A stretch of 64,000 nt of DNA from Lepidodermella squamata (taxonomy: Eukaryota; Animalia; Gastrotricha), in contig JBLDXI010000074.1 of NCBI GenBank assembly GCA_047495785.1, forward strand, positions 868,001 to 932,000. The letters run 5' to 3'. The notes under the pieces were generated by a model, which had not been told where the DNA came from, did not search any database, and was given only the letters and a program-made list of their open reading frames with translations. This document shows positions 3,270 through 51,063 of the stretch, in pieces. Each line of letters starts with the position of its first letter. The first letter of the stretch is position 1. Position numbers and translations under genes: made by a program.

Positions 3270-4139
3270 CGTGCAGTTGAATTGAAGACTTTCGTGGGAG
3301 TCCGGACGCCAAATTGAAGAATTACAGGTTCACCAGGTAGTCGGCAAATTCACCAATCTGTGGAGGTATCATTCACCGGCAAAAATCGGCGTTCTTGTAT
3401 TTAAGTCGAATTAATCTGAGTCAATTAATTTTGTAACATTGTTCTGATGAAAACTATAGCACTTCTTTTTGCTTTTATTCAACTATGCTTTTCCGATTGC
3501 AATGGAAGAGAAAAAGAATAGACATATGCCGCATGTCGCTTAGGTAAGGATGAATACCTTATGAGCAGAGAATCTCACTTTTCAAGCTTTGGAGTATAAG
3601 GGATTCCTAAAAATACAAGGATGGAGCATGATAGATCACTGCTTTATACCTCATCGTTGAGCACCGTGTGATACGATCCTCGCTCTTATGTCATTGCAAG
3701 TTGATAAAATGGTACGTGTAAACGATAAGATAGAAACAGTCATGTTGGAAAAGTGCATAAGATACAGTTAAGGGATGATAAGGATCTGGATCAGATAGTC
3801 GGGAAACAGAAAATAATAGGAGAATTTTCGATCTTTTGGTTTGAGTTCGCCTGGTATATATCGGTATATCTGCGACTGCTGTATGTGCCGTGTTCAAGTC
3901 TTATATCAGCTGCGATCGTCTGCAATCCATCCATAGCGAAGTTATCAAATGTAATAGTAGAAGGCTGGCAGTGGCGCAGTGGCGGTGGCGCCCCTGCAAA
4001 TAGGTCTAAAAGGACTGAAGTGCTTAGTGACGGCGTATCTTAATAATTTGAGCCAATCATTCGGTCTTGGAAATATTTTATTGAATACTCTAGCATGTTA
4101 GCTGATCATGGTTCCCGCCGAATCATGCTGTTCTGCTTG

Positions 4140-33198: not shown

Positions 33199-34168
33199 TT
33201 GAATAGGGACTGCCTGAAATCAATGGCAAATGGCTTGATTTTTTCGCACTTACAGTACTGCGATATTATTCTAAATGAAGCCTGTCCGACTTCTCTTCAA
33301 AAACTACAATCTTTGCAAGATAAGGCTGTCAGAATTGTCATGAATGCGCCGGATTGTGCCGACCCTTCTCCTCTCCGCGACGAGCTCAAATGGCTTGACC
33401 TTCAGGGCAAGCGAAACGTGCACATCGCCACCTTAATGTACAGATGTCTTGCTGGTGACGCACCCGATGTTATAAAATCTATTTTTGTTCCTAATCCTCC
33501 ATCTTCTACTCGTTCTTCGCGTCTCAGCTTCAAAATTCCTACTATGAGACTTGACTACGGCCAAGCCTCTCTTAGTTACGCAGGACCTCTCTTGTTTAAC
33601 AATTTACCACTCCACTTTCATTGTCCTCATCATCGCCCAGTCGATATTTGTCAGGATCTAGAACCTTCCATGTTCTGGAACCTTCCATGTTCTGGAACCT
33701 TCCATGTTCTGGAACCTTCCATGCTCTGGAACCTTCCATGTTCAAGATTATTCCATAGACATTTATAAAGACCTTTTGCTTTCTGTTAACTTCAGATCGT
33801 ATTATTGTATTATTGTACAAAGTTACTGGCTCTTGTTCCAATAAAGGCAATACCTAGCAAACAGCTTCTCGTGTTGTTCTCGGTCCTTACAATATTACTT
33901 CCTATACTAGCCTTCCTCCACGATGCGATTGCGGCTTCAAAATCTGTTACAATGTTCACTCTTGCCGACAACTTGTTTACAATTATCTGTTGACTAAACC
34001 TAAGCTCAAATCATATAAATGCTAAATTTTGTACATCTTTTGTTTTGTTATTATCAAACTTTGAAACGGATTGAAACATGACTCGAATTTTCTGCCACTT
34101 TTATACCACTTGAAACTTTTTGTTATCGTGCTCTCAACTTTGGGATTTATGCACTTAAATAAATAAAT
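33199..34168 (+). mobile_element. 5'-truncated non-LTR retrotransposon (CR1/L2-group-like) 3' end
   Basis: SHLQYC..LQKLQSLQDKAVRIV..LKWL..SYAGPLLFNNLP is a typical post-RT region; (TAAA)n tail at ~34156-34168. Confidence 0.75.
33661..33743. repeat. 17-bp minisatellite (GAACCTTCCATGTTCTG) x ~5
   Basis: Direct tandem copies visible within the LINE fragment. Confidence 0.9.
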
Positions 34169-34267
34169 GGCACCAGGATTCCGAATAGCCCCACGGATGG
34201 GGCTATTCGGACAGGTGTGGGGCTATTAATGATACATAAATATTCAATTCAAATTTTACTGATATGT

Positions 34268-34350
34268 TGTGCTCAGTGGTCGAGTGGCTTTGGATGTGCT
34301 TCTAGAAAGCACAGCAAAGTACAAAACGAGGGTTCGAGTCCAGGCCACGA
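34268..34350 (+). pseudogene. tRNA-derived segment inside the 33098-35023 element
   Basis: A-box-like TGGTCGAGTGG and B-box GGTTCGAGTCC followed by a T-run; stems do not pair properly. Confidence 0.55.
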
Positions 34351-35937
34351 AACAATTTTTTTCCAAACAAAAGTTGGCATTTTTTTGCAATTATTCGAAT
34401 GCATTGCATATCGATGGTTTTTAGCTTAGTTAGTTTTTTAATTAGCAGTAGTAAATTAGCGAATTTTTCATTCATGCCACGAGCACTAGCCTTTCATTCG
34501 GTTAACCTAACGAAAATTTTACTAACCTCTTAAATTCAAAGTATGCCTCAATTGCTGAGAAACTTATCAACTACAAAGCTCATTAGAATATTCCAATCCT
34601 GCCGCATTTCTCTGTTCCGATTGCCCCACAACCTCATTTTTTCGTGGGGCTATTCGGACGCAATTAATTAGACAAAAGTATGAGTCGGATCGGGGCGGTT
34701 TAAATTTTCATGGGTGCCCTATCATCTGTAGGTTCAGAAAAAATTGATCGCAGGTCCAGCAAAATTCTCATCTGGTCCAGGTAATTCAACGCAGAACAGT
34801 GCTTAAACTGAGTTAAGCTTACACCTGGAAGGTAAGCCCATATCTTCACAACCACTTACTCTCAGGTCATGACATTTTTATGGCATGTGGGTCGTCCTTC
34901 CACCTAACTCCGTGCAAAATTTCATTGCTAACGGCCGGGTAGTTTTGGAGTCATGCTCATTCTCCCGTTTGCATGAACATTCGTCCGAATAGCCCCAATG
35001 ACCCAGATTACCCCAACTGACGGTATTAGGCCAAATAATAAACGCGGCTAGTTTGAACGGAAAATGACAAGTCGAACAGCGAATGAGATGGTTCAAATGA
35101 TTCATAAGACGAGCCTTGCAATGGCGTGCACTACTGCGCCCGTTGGATGGGAAGCCGATTCAGCGAACCCTATAAATATGCTCGTAAAATAGCTCAAAAT
35201 CAACCGCCGAGGTGTTCACTTTTCACAGCCTTCCTTTTTCAATTAGAAAGAAAGAACCTGAAGAGCCGGAAGGTTTGACATATTATCCAGCCCTGCTCAA
35301 GTTCCGTGGAGACAGCAAGTTCATTGAAATAATAAGGGACCCGGTGCACTGGACGTGCTGGACCGGACGAATAGCTACCCTTCGAAAAACTAAAAAACTG
35401 TTTCTTTTCGTCCCTTCCCTTGCAAACCAAGCAGTAGCTGGAGTGATCGTTTCAACTGCGACCCTATTATTTCGGACCTTATCTCTCAGAAAATCCTTGG
35501 ACGAGACTGCTTGTTTTAGATGACCTTGGAAATCAGGTTCATTTGTTTAAAAGCAGAAAATTGAATAGGCTCAACATTCGTTTATTAGAGGTTTAAACGG
35601 TTTTTCATGATCGTTGATCTTGTCTGTAAAATAGATAAGGTGCCCATATTTCAAGAAAAAATTTCTCCTATCGAAAAATAGCCATGGCATTTATTTTCAG
35701 GAACTCAAAATTAGTCGAGAGGGCTTTTTCGAGGCAGGCAATTTTTCATTCATACTTAAAATTTTCATCATTGTTGCTATCTATGGTTACTATAAAATTC
35801 AGGTTAAGCAGCATGGCGCGGCACGCGATTGCTATCTAATCGCACCGGGGTCATTTGCTCGCGACGATTTCAAATTTATTATCGCTAACATCGCTTCATT
35901 TTTCAACGTAACTCGACACATATTCTTCAACGTCATA

Positions 35938-49030: not shown

Positions 49031-49252
49031 CTTAGGGACAAGAAATTGTCAAAAAACAAGAATCGAGAAAAAATGCTTTTATCCAAATATCCCTTCGCAA
49101 GAACGATTTTTAATCCTTTAAGTGGTCTCATAAAATCCTCCTAGAAATTTCTTACACAGCCAAATGTCTAGCGGAGAAAACCTCAATTCCCTACTCAAAA
49201 ATCGATTGGGTATTTGAGCTTTATAACCTAAAATAAAAGAGAAAAAAACATG

Positions 49253-49269
49253 CGCTCCTGGGTGGGCTC

Positions 49270-49309
<40 letters not shown>

Positions 49310-49326
49310 AATTGCGCCACAGAAGC
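49253..49326 (-). tRNA. tRNA-Asn(GTT), intact
   Basis: GCTTCTGTGGCGCAATTGGTTAGCGCGTTCGGCTGTTAACCGAAAGGTTGGTGGTTCGAGCCCACCCAGGAGCG folds as a cloverleaf and is followed by a T7 terminator. Confidence 0.96.
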
Positions 49327-49474
49327 TGCCTTAATGCTACGAGTTATTAAGGCATGACAAAAGAAAAACAGCAAGCATCGCACTAAAAAGCGTGTTTGGA
49401 TCTCATTTAAGTGTAAACCCGCGATAGCTCAGCTGGTAGAGCGGAGGACTGTAGATGAAATGCAGGTATCCTTA

Positions 49475-50919
49475 AGGTCTGCGCACATACTCGTATGAAA
49501 AAATGTGTATGTGATTTGTAATAAGTTTTTTGCCGGGGTCGTATGTGTTGGCAAAAAAAATCACATACAGACCCGTTCACAAACTGATTTCTTTTCTCCC
49601 TGTATGTGATTTTTTTTCTGGCCGAAGAGGCCGCTGAAAAAAATGACCAACTTCGATGGGGCTCGAACCCCGTCCGCCCGTTGAACAGGCCGGTATGATA
49701 GCAACTGTACTATGTTGCCATCATATTTATCTGTCGCTATAAAAAGGCTAATTATTGGTTGCTAATATCTATAAAAGCTATCCGCGTTTTCTGGGTCAAG
49801 TGCGGGCATGAATCATTAATCTTCGACTTGTTTGTTGACGCTTTCATCAATGCATTTTTTGCCTTAAAGCCTAATTCATAGGTCACACATTAAGCTTGAC
49901 GGCTTAGCCATGTCGATATAATTATCGATGTGTGCGAAGTCGTCAAGGGTTCGATTCGACGTGCCGCCATCCCTTTTTTCAGTGGCCTCTTCGGCCAGAA
50001 AAAAAATCACATACAAGGAGAAAAGAAATCAGTTTGTGAACGGGGGCTGTATAGGTCTCCGCACAAACTCTGCATGAAATAAGTAGACAAGTTTTGCGTT
50101 AAGTTTTTTGCCTCGCTCGCATGTTTTAAGAAAAACATATCACATACGACCGATTCACAAACTCTGAATGCGTAAGCGTTATGTATTTTTGCAACGAGGT
50201 ATTTTTACATATCGCTTAAAAAAGTCGTGTGGTGAGCGGGGTTCGAACCCGAGCCTCCCATCGTCGAGGCCAGTCAATAACCAACCTCGCCACAACGACT
50301 TACGCAAACAGTGAGATAATTTCTCCGGTTTTAATCGTGCCACCATCACAACTCTGCGAACATTGAAGTTGAAAATATTAATTATTATGACTAATTGAAT
50401 AATTATCAAAAACTCGATGGAAATTCAGGAAAAAATCATAAAAATTCAGAAGAATTTTTTTTAATTCCCTGTACCTTTTGGGGTCATTTGGGATAAATAA
50501 ATAAGAAATTTTAAGTGCTCTATAAATAATTACCAATTATATTAATTAATAATTGTATCACGATGCGTGATCCGTCAAGTACTGATTACTACAACTCGAA
50601 ATCATGCGTCTTGTTAGTGTAATCGGTGTTATGCCGATCTCACAAACAAGTCACCCGGGTTCGATCCCCGGTCAAAGCAAGCCTTTTTTAGGTGACAACG
50701 CCGTTCAGCAAAAACATAACGCATACGCATGCAGAGTTTGTGAATAGGGTCCGTATGTGGTCGTATGTTTTTCGTCGTATGCGTAAGTAATTGGCCGTAT
50801 GCGTAAGCAAAAAAAAAGATACGGAGTTTGTGCGGAGACCTTATGCTTTTTGCTGTATGTGTATGTGTTTGCTCGCATACGCATGAGAAAAAAAAAGAAA
50901 CGAGTTTGTGGGAAGGCCT
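49475..50919. mobile_element. Non-autonomous DNA transposon with 3-bp TSD (TTA), PIF/Harbinger-like, inserted in tRNA-Tyr
   Basis: TIRs AGGTCTGCGCACATACTCG / CGAGTTTGTGGGAAGGCCT (15/19 match); TTA duplicated at 49472-49474 and 50920-50922; long internal inverted arms. Confidence 0.88.
50053..50841. mobile_element. Related element nested in 49475-50919 (TSD TAT)
   Basis: Perfect 18-bp TIR AGGTCTCCGCACAAACTC / GAGTTTGTGCGGAGACCT; TAT at 50050-50052 and 50842-50844. Confidence 0.92.
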
Positions 50920-51063
50920 TTAGGTCGGTGGTTCAAGTCCGCCTCGCGGGAATATTTTTTCAGCAACCACCAATCTTGTAACCGTGATTATTTTTATTTC
51001 AGAATAAATATGTAAAATACCAACAACAAATGTGAGTATAATTTTGGCCGAGGGTAAATAGTC

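Follow-up and report, generated by a model that had tools for sequence, protein, structure and literature searches.

The 64,000-nucleotide stretch of the genome of the gastrotrich Lepidodermella squamata considered here (the window; NCBI GenBank assembly GCA_047495785.1, contig JBLDXI010000074.1, positions 868,001 to 932,000 of the forward strand) contains two nested MITEs (miniature inverted-repeat transposable elements) of the PIF/Harbinger type, F1 and F2, each of which carries within either terminal arm an outward-facing unit derived from a tRNA gene. This architecture, the inheritance of the units within the transposon lineage, and the slower evolution of the units in comparison with the rest of the element are securely established as structural findings. 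From the sequence of the units, we infer that RNA polymerase III (Pol III) or TFIIIC makes use of them. Our favoured explanation, to which we assign about an even chance, is that the conserved tRNA-derived modules of these nested MITEs act in cis for the transposon through a putative recruitment of TFIIIC and Pol III. All three alternatives discussed below are ranked lower.

Nested MITEs of the PIF/Harbinger lineage

F1 spans positions 49475 to 50919 on the plus strand (about 653 bp without its nested insert; termini AGGTCTGCGCACATACTCG ... CGAGTTTGTGGGAAGGCCT) and is flanked by the target-site duplication (TSD) TTA. F2 lies in the right arm of F1 at 50053 to 50841 on the same strand (about 781 bp; termini AGGTCTCCGCACAAACTC ... 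GAGTTTGTGCGGAGACCT); its TSD is the TAT found at 50050-50052 and again at 50842-50844, and those F1 copies that lack the F2 insert read CTGTATGCT at the corresponding point. Our whole-genome search returned at least 14 full copies of F1 (91-98% identity), about 10 copies of F2 (87-98% identity), and a diverged F1 subfamily of 637 bp and about 78% identity, which we designate F1d. When a sequence model of the arms was used for the search, about 113 matches to the element ends were recovered from the genome. The TSDs of F1 are perfect at 3 bp in 13 of 15 copies (TAA five times; TTA, ATA and TTT twice each; TTC and TCA), with the remaining two imperfect, and those of F2, likewise 3 bp, are perfect in six of the seven scorable copies. 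Across the families, the duplications are thus 3 bp in length and read TAA or TTA in most cases.

Every full copy of F1 and F2 has the layout that the initial annotation had described for the two elements of the window: a terminal inverted repeat (TIR), a subterminal TIR-like repeat, an outward unit, a spacer, a second outward unit, a subterminal repeat and the closing TIR. The terminal arms measure about 165 bp each, and one tRNA-like unit is positioned just inside each of them. In F1, the left subterminal repeat AGACCCGTTCACAAACT occupies 49570 to 49586 on the plus strand (partner at about 50030-50047), and the inner arms are 97% complementary (49572-49642 versus 49974-50044); the left repeat of F2, ACGACCGATTCACAAACT, occupies 50148 to 50164 on the plus strand (partner at about 50733-50750). 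We considered the segment 49572-50044 as a separate MITE nested in an outer one, and ruled this out, as the composite is common to all F1, F1d and F2 copies. The inner repeat has no TSD of its own, and its flanks, TAC and GTA, are mirror images of each other. What looks like an 'inner TIR' (AGACCCGTTCACAAACT and related sequences) recurs in every copy of the three families and repeats the TIR motif in a subterminal position; it does not mark a third nested element. A weak match of the F1 left arm to the Rfam family snoZ107_R87 (E 0.35) is taken as chance.

The genome contains many matches to the transposase domain DDE_Tnp_4, and one locus provides an apparently intact autonomous partner with F1 termini and a TAA TSD (G000:C25:400805-404367, corresponding to L073 1006-4568; 3.56 kb). 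Its transposase gene has two exons, across which homologues align, and includes an open reading frame (ORF) at 1612-2235 on the minus strand of L073 (PF13359 at E 3.6e-13); its second, Myb/SANT-like gene is represented by an ORF at 3465-3947 on the same strand (MADF_DNA_bdg, PF10545, at E 2.5e-12). DDE_Tnp_4 and MADF together are the canonical gene set of a Harbinger element, which makes F1, F1d and F2 Tourist-type MITEs of a PIF/Harbinger lineage, and every feature tested fits this assignment: transposase, second gene, TSD, size and shared termini. The elements are shorter than 1 kb, non-coding and multicopy, and have their termini in common with the autonomous element, as is typical of Tourist-like MITEs. 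The earlier view of F1 and F2 as DNA-transposon MITEs is thereby confirmed and can now be given a superfamily.

The arms of F1 are 93-97% identical to the autonomous element, and the latter possesses the same two tRNA-like units, one at each end. Its right unit is found some 390 bp upstream of the MADF gene, pointing away from that gene; its left unit shares the strand of the transposase gene and follows about 360 bp downstream. The initial annotation had regarded an absence of the units from most family copies as the mark of independent SINE (short interspersed nuclear element) insertions. The units are present in all full copies of the families and at both ends of the autonomous element, and independent SINE insertions are ruled out on these grounds; since the autonomous partner carries both units, they are part of the transposon lineage rather than SINEs inserted at a later stage.

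No autonomous partner of F2 was found in the genome. One locus considered for this role (L074, G000:C31:59500-67000) was ruled out: it consists of a tandem duplication of 4.4 kb, and each duplicated unit contains a truncated F2 left end in which the homology ends at the T-run and the B box is absent. Among the other copies, F1d and F2 elements are clustered and inserted in or beside each other at L020, L021 and L038 (G000:C15:2671653-2673717), which, together with the nesting in the window, suggests that insertion of the family into its own AT-rich arms is frequent. In a foldback derivative of F1, 973 bp long, the left arm and the left-type tRNA-like unit are present at both ends (L028 803-1775, G000:C55:844886-845858), and an F1 copy of 1281 bp carries in its central part a further insert of about 630 bp (L015/L024, G000:C3:2762119-2763398). 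A short run of TTAGGG-like repeats (GGTTAGGGTTAGGTTAGGGT) near the element, in the right flank of the F1d copy at L022, may hint at the telomere repeat type of the host.

The gene into which F1 is inserted is a tRNA-Tyr(GTA) gene on the plus strand. Its 5' part, which includes the intron and ends in the TTA target site, extends from 49418 to 49474 and is interrupted after ...ATCCTTA; the rest, TTAGGTCGGTGGTTCAAGTCCGCCTCGCGGGA, picks up at 50920, where the duplicated TTA and the 3' part of the gene reach to 50951. Both parts were delimited by alignment to an intact tRNA-Tyr paralogue (L076, G000:C68:35100-38159), which represents the empty site and reads ...ATCCTTAGGTCGG.... Because this paralogue is uninterrupted and contains TTA once only, the 1445 bp between 49475 and 50919 are an insertion with a TTA TSD. 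F1 hence entered one of many tRNA-Tyr genes at a TTA, and F2 is nested in F1. At least 40 copies of tRNA-Tyr are present genome-wide, many within tandem arrays of 4.5 kb, and the loss of the disrupted copy is therefore harmless. L076 itself holds 17 tRNA genes of differing specificity in 3 kb and belongs to the extremely dense tRNA arrays (C10, C48 and C68) whose tandem repeat unit measures about 4.5 kb.

With the exception of a single tRNA-Met gene, no tRNA gene was found within 1.5 kb of the other F1, F1d and F2 loci (37 checked). This tRNA-Met gene (L004 2112-2183) starts 45 bp past the right end of an F1 copy, the sole other copy near a tRNA gene. A Dada-like targeting of tRNA genes was ruled out, since the TSDs are 3 bp and the other copies reside outside tRNA genes. 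The insertion in tRNA-Tyr is incidental, and neither family targets tRNA genes.

The tRNA-derived units

All four units of the window were recovered where the initial annotation had placed them. In F1, the left unit (unit 1) runs from 49644 to 49721 on the minus strand, with its B box at 49660-49669 and a T7 run at 49637-49643, and the right unit (unit 2) from 49897 to 49973 on the plus strand (B box 49948-49957; T6 at 49974-49979). In F2, the left unit (unit 3) occupies 50224 to 50301 on the minus strand (B box 50240-50249; T6 at 50218-50223) and has a long acceptor-like closing stem, and the right unit (unit 4) occupies 50608 to 50683 on the plus strand (B box 50658-50667; T6 at 50684-50689) and has a perfect T arm of 5 bp.

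The geometry of the units is best appreciated across eight lineage-units, namely one left and one right unit from each of F1, F1d, F2 and the autonomous element. These units face outward and are about 78 nt long. The B-box core GGGTTCG is found in all eight, and in all eight the run of six to seven T residues begins exactly 26 nt after the start of the B box, a spacing shared with the adjacent, real tRNA-Asn gene and with many genuine tRNA genes across the genome. In six of the eight, the highest-scoring A-box-like match, with 6-8 of 8 positions, is placed 42-43 nt upstream of the B box. The motif GGTTCGANNC followed by a T-run occurs at six distinct sites in the 64 kb of the window, compared with 0.41 matches expected by chance; these sites are the four units, the real tRNA-Asn gene, and a tRNA-like repeat at 34331.

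The bodies of the units retain a measurable likeness to tRNA genes. Outside the B-box core, they resemble the genome's own tRNA-Asp, tRNA-Glu and tRNA-Pro genes more than shuffled sequences do (z 1.9-3.5 in seven of the eight lineage-units; at most 3.5% of the shuffles reach the score in five of the eight). Unit 1 exceeds its shuffles in likeness to tRNA-Asp, and its second hairpin corresponds to the anticodon arm of that tRNA; the body of unit 4 resembles the genome's tRNA-Glu and tRNA-Asp, with a T arm like that of tRNA-Glu. In slices of about 100 nt, unit 4 matched the Rfam tRNA model end to end over exactly 50608-50679 (16.5 bits against a gathering threshold of 29; E 0.27), and unit 3 matched the tRNA-Sec model over 50228-50294 (21.4 bits against 47; E 0.018). 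The E-value of unit 4 refers to all 4227 Rfam families, and both matches are sub-threshold. Folded as RNA, the units of the window are stable (z -2.6 to -5.0, with unit 2 at -5.0) and differ in shape. RNAalifold proposed a three-hairpin fold for 13 left units with only three compensatory pairs, a variation too low to support the structure.

ARAGORN called none of the units, neither in the window nor in the 37 loci, and an Rfam scan of the region gave no tRNA match among the four. The stems had been described as decayed by the initial annotation, and these results, with nothing beyond the sub-threshold slice matches for units 3 and 4, bear this description out. By their sequence, the units are degenerate tRNA derivatives and not functional tRNA genes. 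They were never encountered alone: the genome-wide pattern list contained no unit-type 3' halves outside the F1, F1d and F2 copies.

Two further tRNA-related features of the window belong to its context. An intact tRNA-Asn(GTT) gene on the minus strand at 49252 to 49326, called by ARAGORN and scored by the Rfam tRNA model at 69.2 bits, adjoins the disrupted tRNA-Tyr gene. The tRNA-like site at 34331 belongs to a multicopy repeat at 34166-34480 with at least 40 matches of 80-97% identity; its short form of about 199 bp ends in a T-run right after the tRNA-like unit, and its longer form measures about 315 bp. The unit of this repeat has an A-box-like TCAGTGGTCGAGTGG and, at 34331, the B box GGTTCGAGTCC, and ARAGORN made no call in the window copy. 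Other copies of the repeat read ...GGGTTCGAGTCCACGCCGCGGAGCAATTTTTTT; these may represent genuine tRNA genes that have a conserved leader of 95 nt.

Conservation of the units and their possible role

When the consensus sequences of F1, F1d and F2 are aligned three ways, only 12 invariant runs of at least 6 nt are left. The B boxes and the T/A runs, two of each, account for four of these, and the remainder correspond in most cases to the cores of the TIRs and of the subterminal repeats. When F1 and F2 are compared, the B box is identical at 9-10 of 11 positions and the T-run at 6 of 6, as against 5-6 of 15-16 positions in the 15 nt between them. Likeness in this inter-box stretch amounts to only about 30-40%, both for F1 against F2 and for left against right units within F1 and within F1d (60% within F2); in F1, the two units agree there at 5 of 16 positions, though the arms that adjoin them are 90% alike. 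When F1 is set against F1d, the units are identical at 148 of 167 positions (88.6%), compared with 231 of 314 in the arms (73.6%; p 1e-4 versus the units) and 128 of 175 in the spacer (73.1%; p 3e-4 versus the units). In this comparison, it is hence the units as a whole, not the boxes alone nor the terminal repeats, that are the slowest-evolving part of the element. The preferential retention of promoter boxes and terminators proposed by the initial annotation is supported in part: B boxes and T-runs stand among the 12 invariant blocks and equal the TIR cores in invariance, the entire units also evolve slowly between F1 and F1d, and the A box is weak.

The element probably uses its units, since the promoter motif and the stop signal stayed intact across related families. 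Each element, like its 3.56-kb autonomous relative, carries an outward, worn-down tRNA gene just inside each terminal arm, of which the type-2 Pol III geometry would be the surviving feature: a B box (GGGTTCG...C), with an A-like box some 43 nt upstream of it, and a terminator of six to seven T residues 26 nt after the B-box start that would stop a transcript short of the transposase-binding repeats. We envisage that such modules act in cis for the transposon, in that TFIIIC and probably also Pol III would be recruited to its two ends. Their recruitment could keep the ends open and nucleosome-poor, or insulated from the chromatin and transcription of the neighbourhood; tRNA-like RNAs of about 80 nt could arise as a by-product, and MITEs that spread would scatter potential TFIIIC sites as a side effect. 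Three properties point to a role in cis: the modules are kept in the autonomous element as well as in the MITEs, their evolution is slower than that of the terminal repeats, and each of them ends just before the transposase-binding sites. As a lead on plausibility only, a Harbinger-derived MADF protein is reported to raise the binding of TFIIIC at an adjacent 7SL (Pol III) gene in a fish (PMC11893794). A bolder version, which we advance as possible but doubtful, holds that the Harbinger lineage turned tRNA remnants into working outward TFIIIC/Pol III cis-elements that aid its movement, and that the MITEs would thus be cut-and-paste seeders of TFIIIC sites.

A number of observations weigh against a cis-acting role of the modules. 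The initial annotation had ascribed a B box, an A-box-like motif and a downstream oligo-T to each unit; B box and oligo-T stand, but the A-box-like motif is the weakest part and does not, taken singly, exceed shuffled sequences except in unit 4 (p ~0.01). Unit 1 gave no Rfam match and unit 2 none to the tRNA clan in their slices of about 100 nt. ARAGORN calls at relaxed thresholds had to be dropped as evidence for a cloverleaf, since shuffling of the bodies with the T arm left in place yields calls equally often; no cloverleaf is therefore demonstrable. The right unit of F1 is a mosaic whose homology to the autonomous element begins at the B box, so that recombination has occurred and could inflate the apparent conservation. 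Substitutions within the families are too sparse for a test of polymorphism in the boxes. Lastly, a distant Harbinger element from another organism (L081 3071-8692; NCBI GCA_977066305.1, CDRUPS010003488.1), about 5.6 kb long with 28-nt TIRs (AGCCTCGGTCAGATTACACGATTT...), a TTA TSD and several ORFs, has no module of B box and T-run. Across species, the search for relatives of the transposase yielded only matches of at most 37% identity, and L081, the one locus examined among them, is a typical Harbinger.

Part of this evidence would suit an explanation of the units as neutral relics, which we consider unlikely: a captured tRNA gene would have been duplicated to both ends by symmetrisation of the arms, and the resulting passengers would be decaying, with boxes that are alike through youth or shared ancestry. 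Captured host fragments are frequent in DNA transposons. The cloverleaf is gone, and the constraint comparison covers only three to four related lineages of one genome, both of which count against a cis-acting role as well; moreover, the B box is mutated in individual copies, for example L013, L011 and L037. Passive decay does not, however, sit well with inter-box stretches of 15 nt that are nearly randomised (F1 versus F2, and F1 left versus right) between flanking blocks of 7 and 6 nt that, like their spacing, are invariant in all eight lineage-units, nor with units significantly better conserved between F1 and F1d than the TIR arms and the spacer. The 26-nt spacing is also free to change, as indels in the decayed copy L019 have altered it to 25 and 27 nt; another decayed copy, L027, has no terminator.

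The GGGTTCG block, the T-run and the local hairpins might instead be a binding site or structural signal that serves the transposon's own proteins (MADF or transposase) or the secondary structure of the DNA during transposition, their likeness to Pol III signals then being a leftover or a coincidence. The Myb/MADF proteins of Harbinger elements are known to bind subterminal sites, and the distance between the block and the subterminal TIR-like repeat is nearly constant across the arms. The right-hand units of F1d and of the autonomous element read GGTTCGTCTC, with T in place of the conserved A58, a loss in two lineage-units that a true B box should resist and that speaks against the Pol III reading, too. 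Yet the motif occurs once per end, the evident repeated motifs being CACAAACT and CATAC/GTATG, and neither the geometry of A-like box, B box and terminator nor the tRNA-like bodies would be expected of a transposase site. We regard this explanation as decidedly improbable.

Exaptation by the host, in which insertions would be kept as tDNA-like insulators or as sources of tRNA-like small RNAs, appears to us very improbable. As reviewed in PMC7990762 and PMC7014570, tRNA genes (tDNAs) and the B boxes of SINEs serve as TFIIIC-dependent boundaries in yeast and mammals, which lends the idea some appeal. The copies are, on the other side, young (91-98% identical), few (tens) and mutually nested, one of them disrupts a tRNA gene, and there is no sign of locus-specific conservation. 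Were the modules inert, the locus would amount to a pair of Harbinger MITEs with decayed tRNA pseudogenes and one redundant tRNA-Tyr gene disrupted.

Comparison with known systems

In most respects, F1 and F2 conform to PIF/Harbinger elements and their Tourist-like MITEs: they share with them the combination of DDE_Tnp_4 and a Myb/SANT-type (MADF) protein, the TWA-biased 3-bp TSDs, the short TIRs with subterminal repeats, and the short non-autonomous derivatives that nest in one another. What sets them apart is the outward tRNA-derived unit with B box and oligo-T in each subterminal region. Our literature search, conducted in a limited library and hence no proof of novelty, returned no Harbinger element or MITE described with paired tRNA-like units.

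The location of a DNA transposon in a tRNA gene recalls the Dada elements. These elements are site-specific for small-RNA genes (tRNA, snRNA) and generate TSDs of 6-7 bp, whereas the TSDs of F1 and F2 are 3 bp and about 35 of 37 other loci have no tRNA gene within 1.5 kb.

The tRNA-derived SINEs, such as mouse B2, are likewise mobile repeats with internal A and B boxes derived from a Pol III gene and are able to spread potential TFIIIC sites; in the 7SL-derived Alu, the boxes are laid out alike. The mobility of SINEs depends on reverse transcription of the Pol III transcript that they themselves produce, and they have a single head, a tail that is related to long interspersed nuclear elements or A-rich, and TSDs of variable length. 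The units described here, in contrast, end after about 80 nt at a terminator without a tail, form an inverted pair, and travel by cut-and-paste inside a TIR element.

Insulator sites of the tDNA and extra-TFIIIC (ETC) kind offer a further parallel, as a B box may be a platform for TFIIIC whether it is transcribed or not, and it flanks in our case a unit that perhaps needs insulation. The known sites of this kind are host loci or SINEs rather than the ends of DNA transposons. SINEs that spread by retrotransposition are already known to carry mobile Pol III promoters, and chromatin boundaries and looping are shaped by their B boxes. If a cis-acting role of the F1 and F2 modules is correct, they would represent the DNA-transposon counterpart of these SINE-borne B boxes: a transposon that employs the Pol III/TFIIIC machinery of its host in its own cis-architecture, and with it a new route by which TFIIIC sites could spread.

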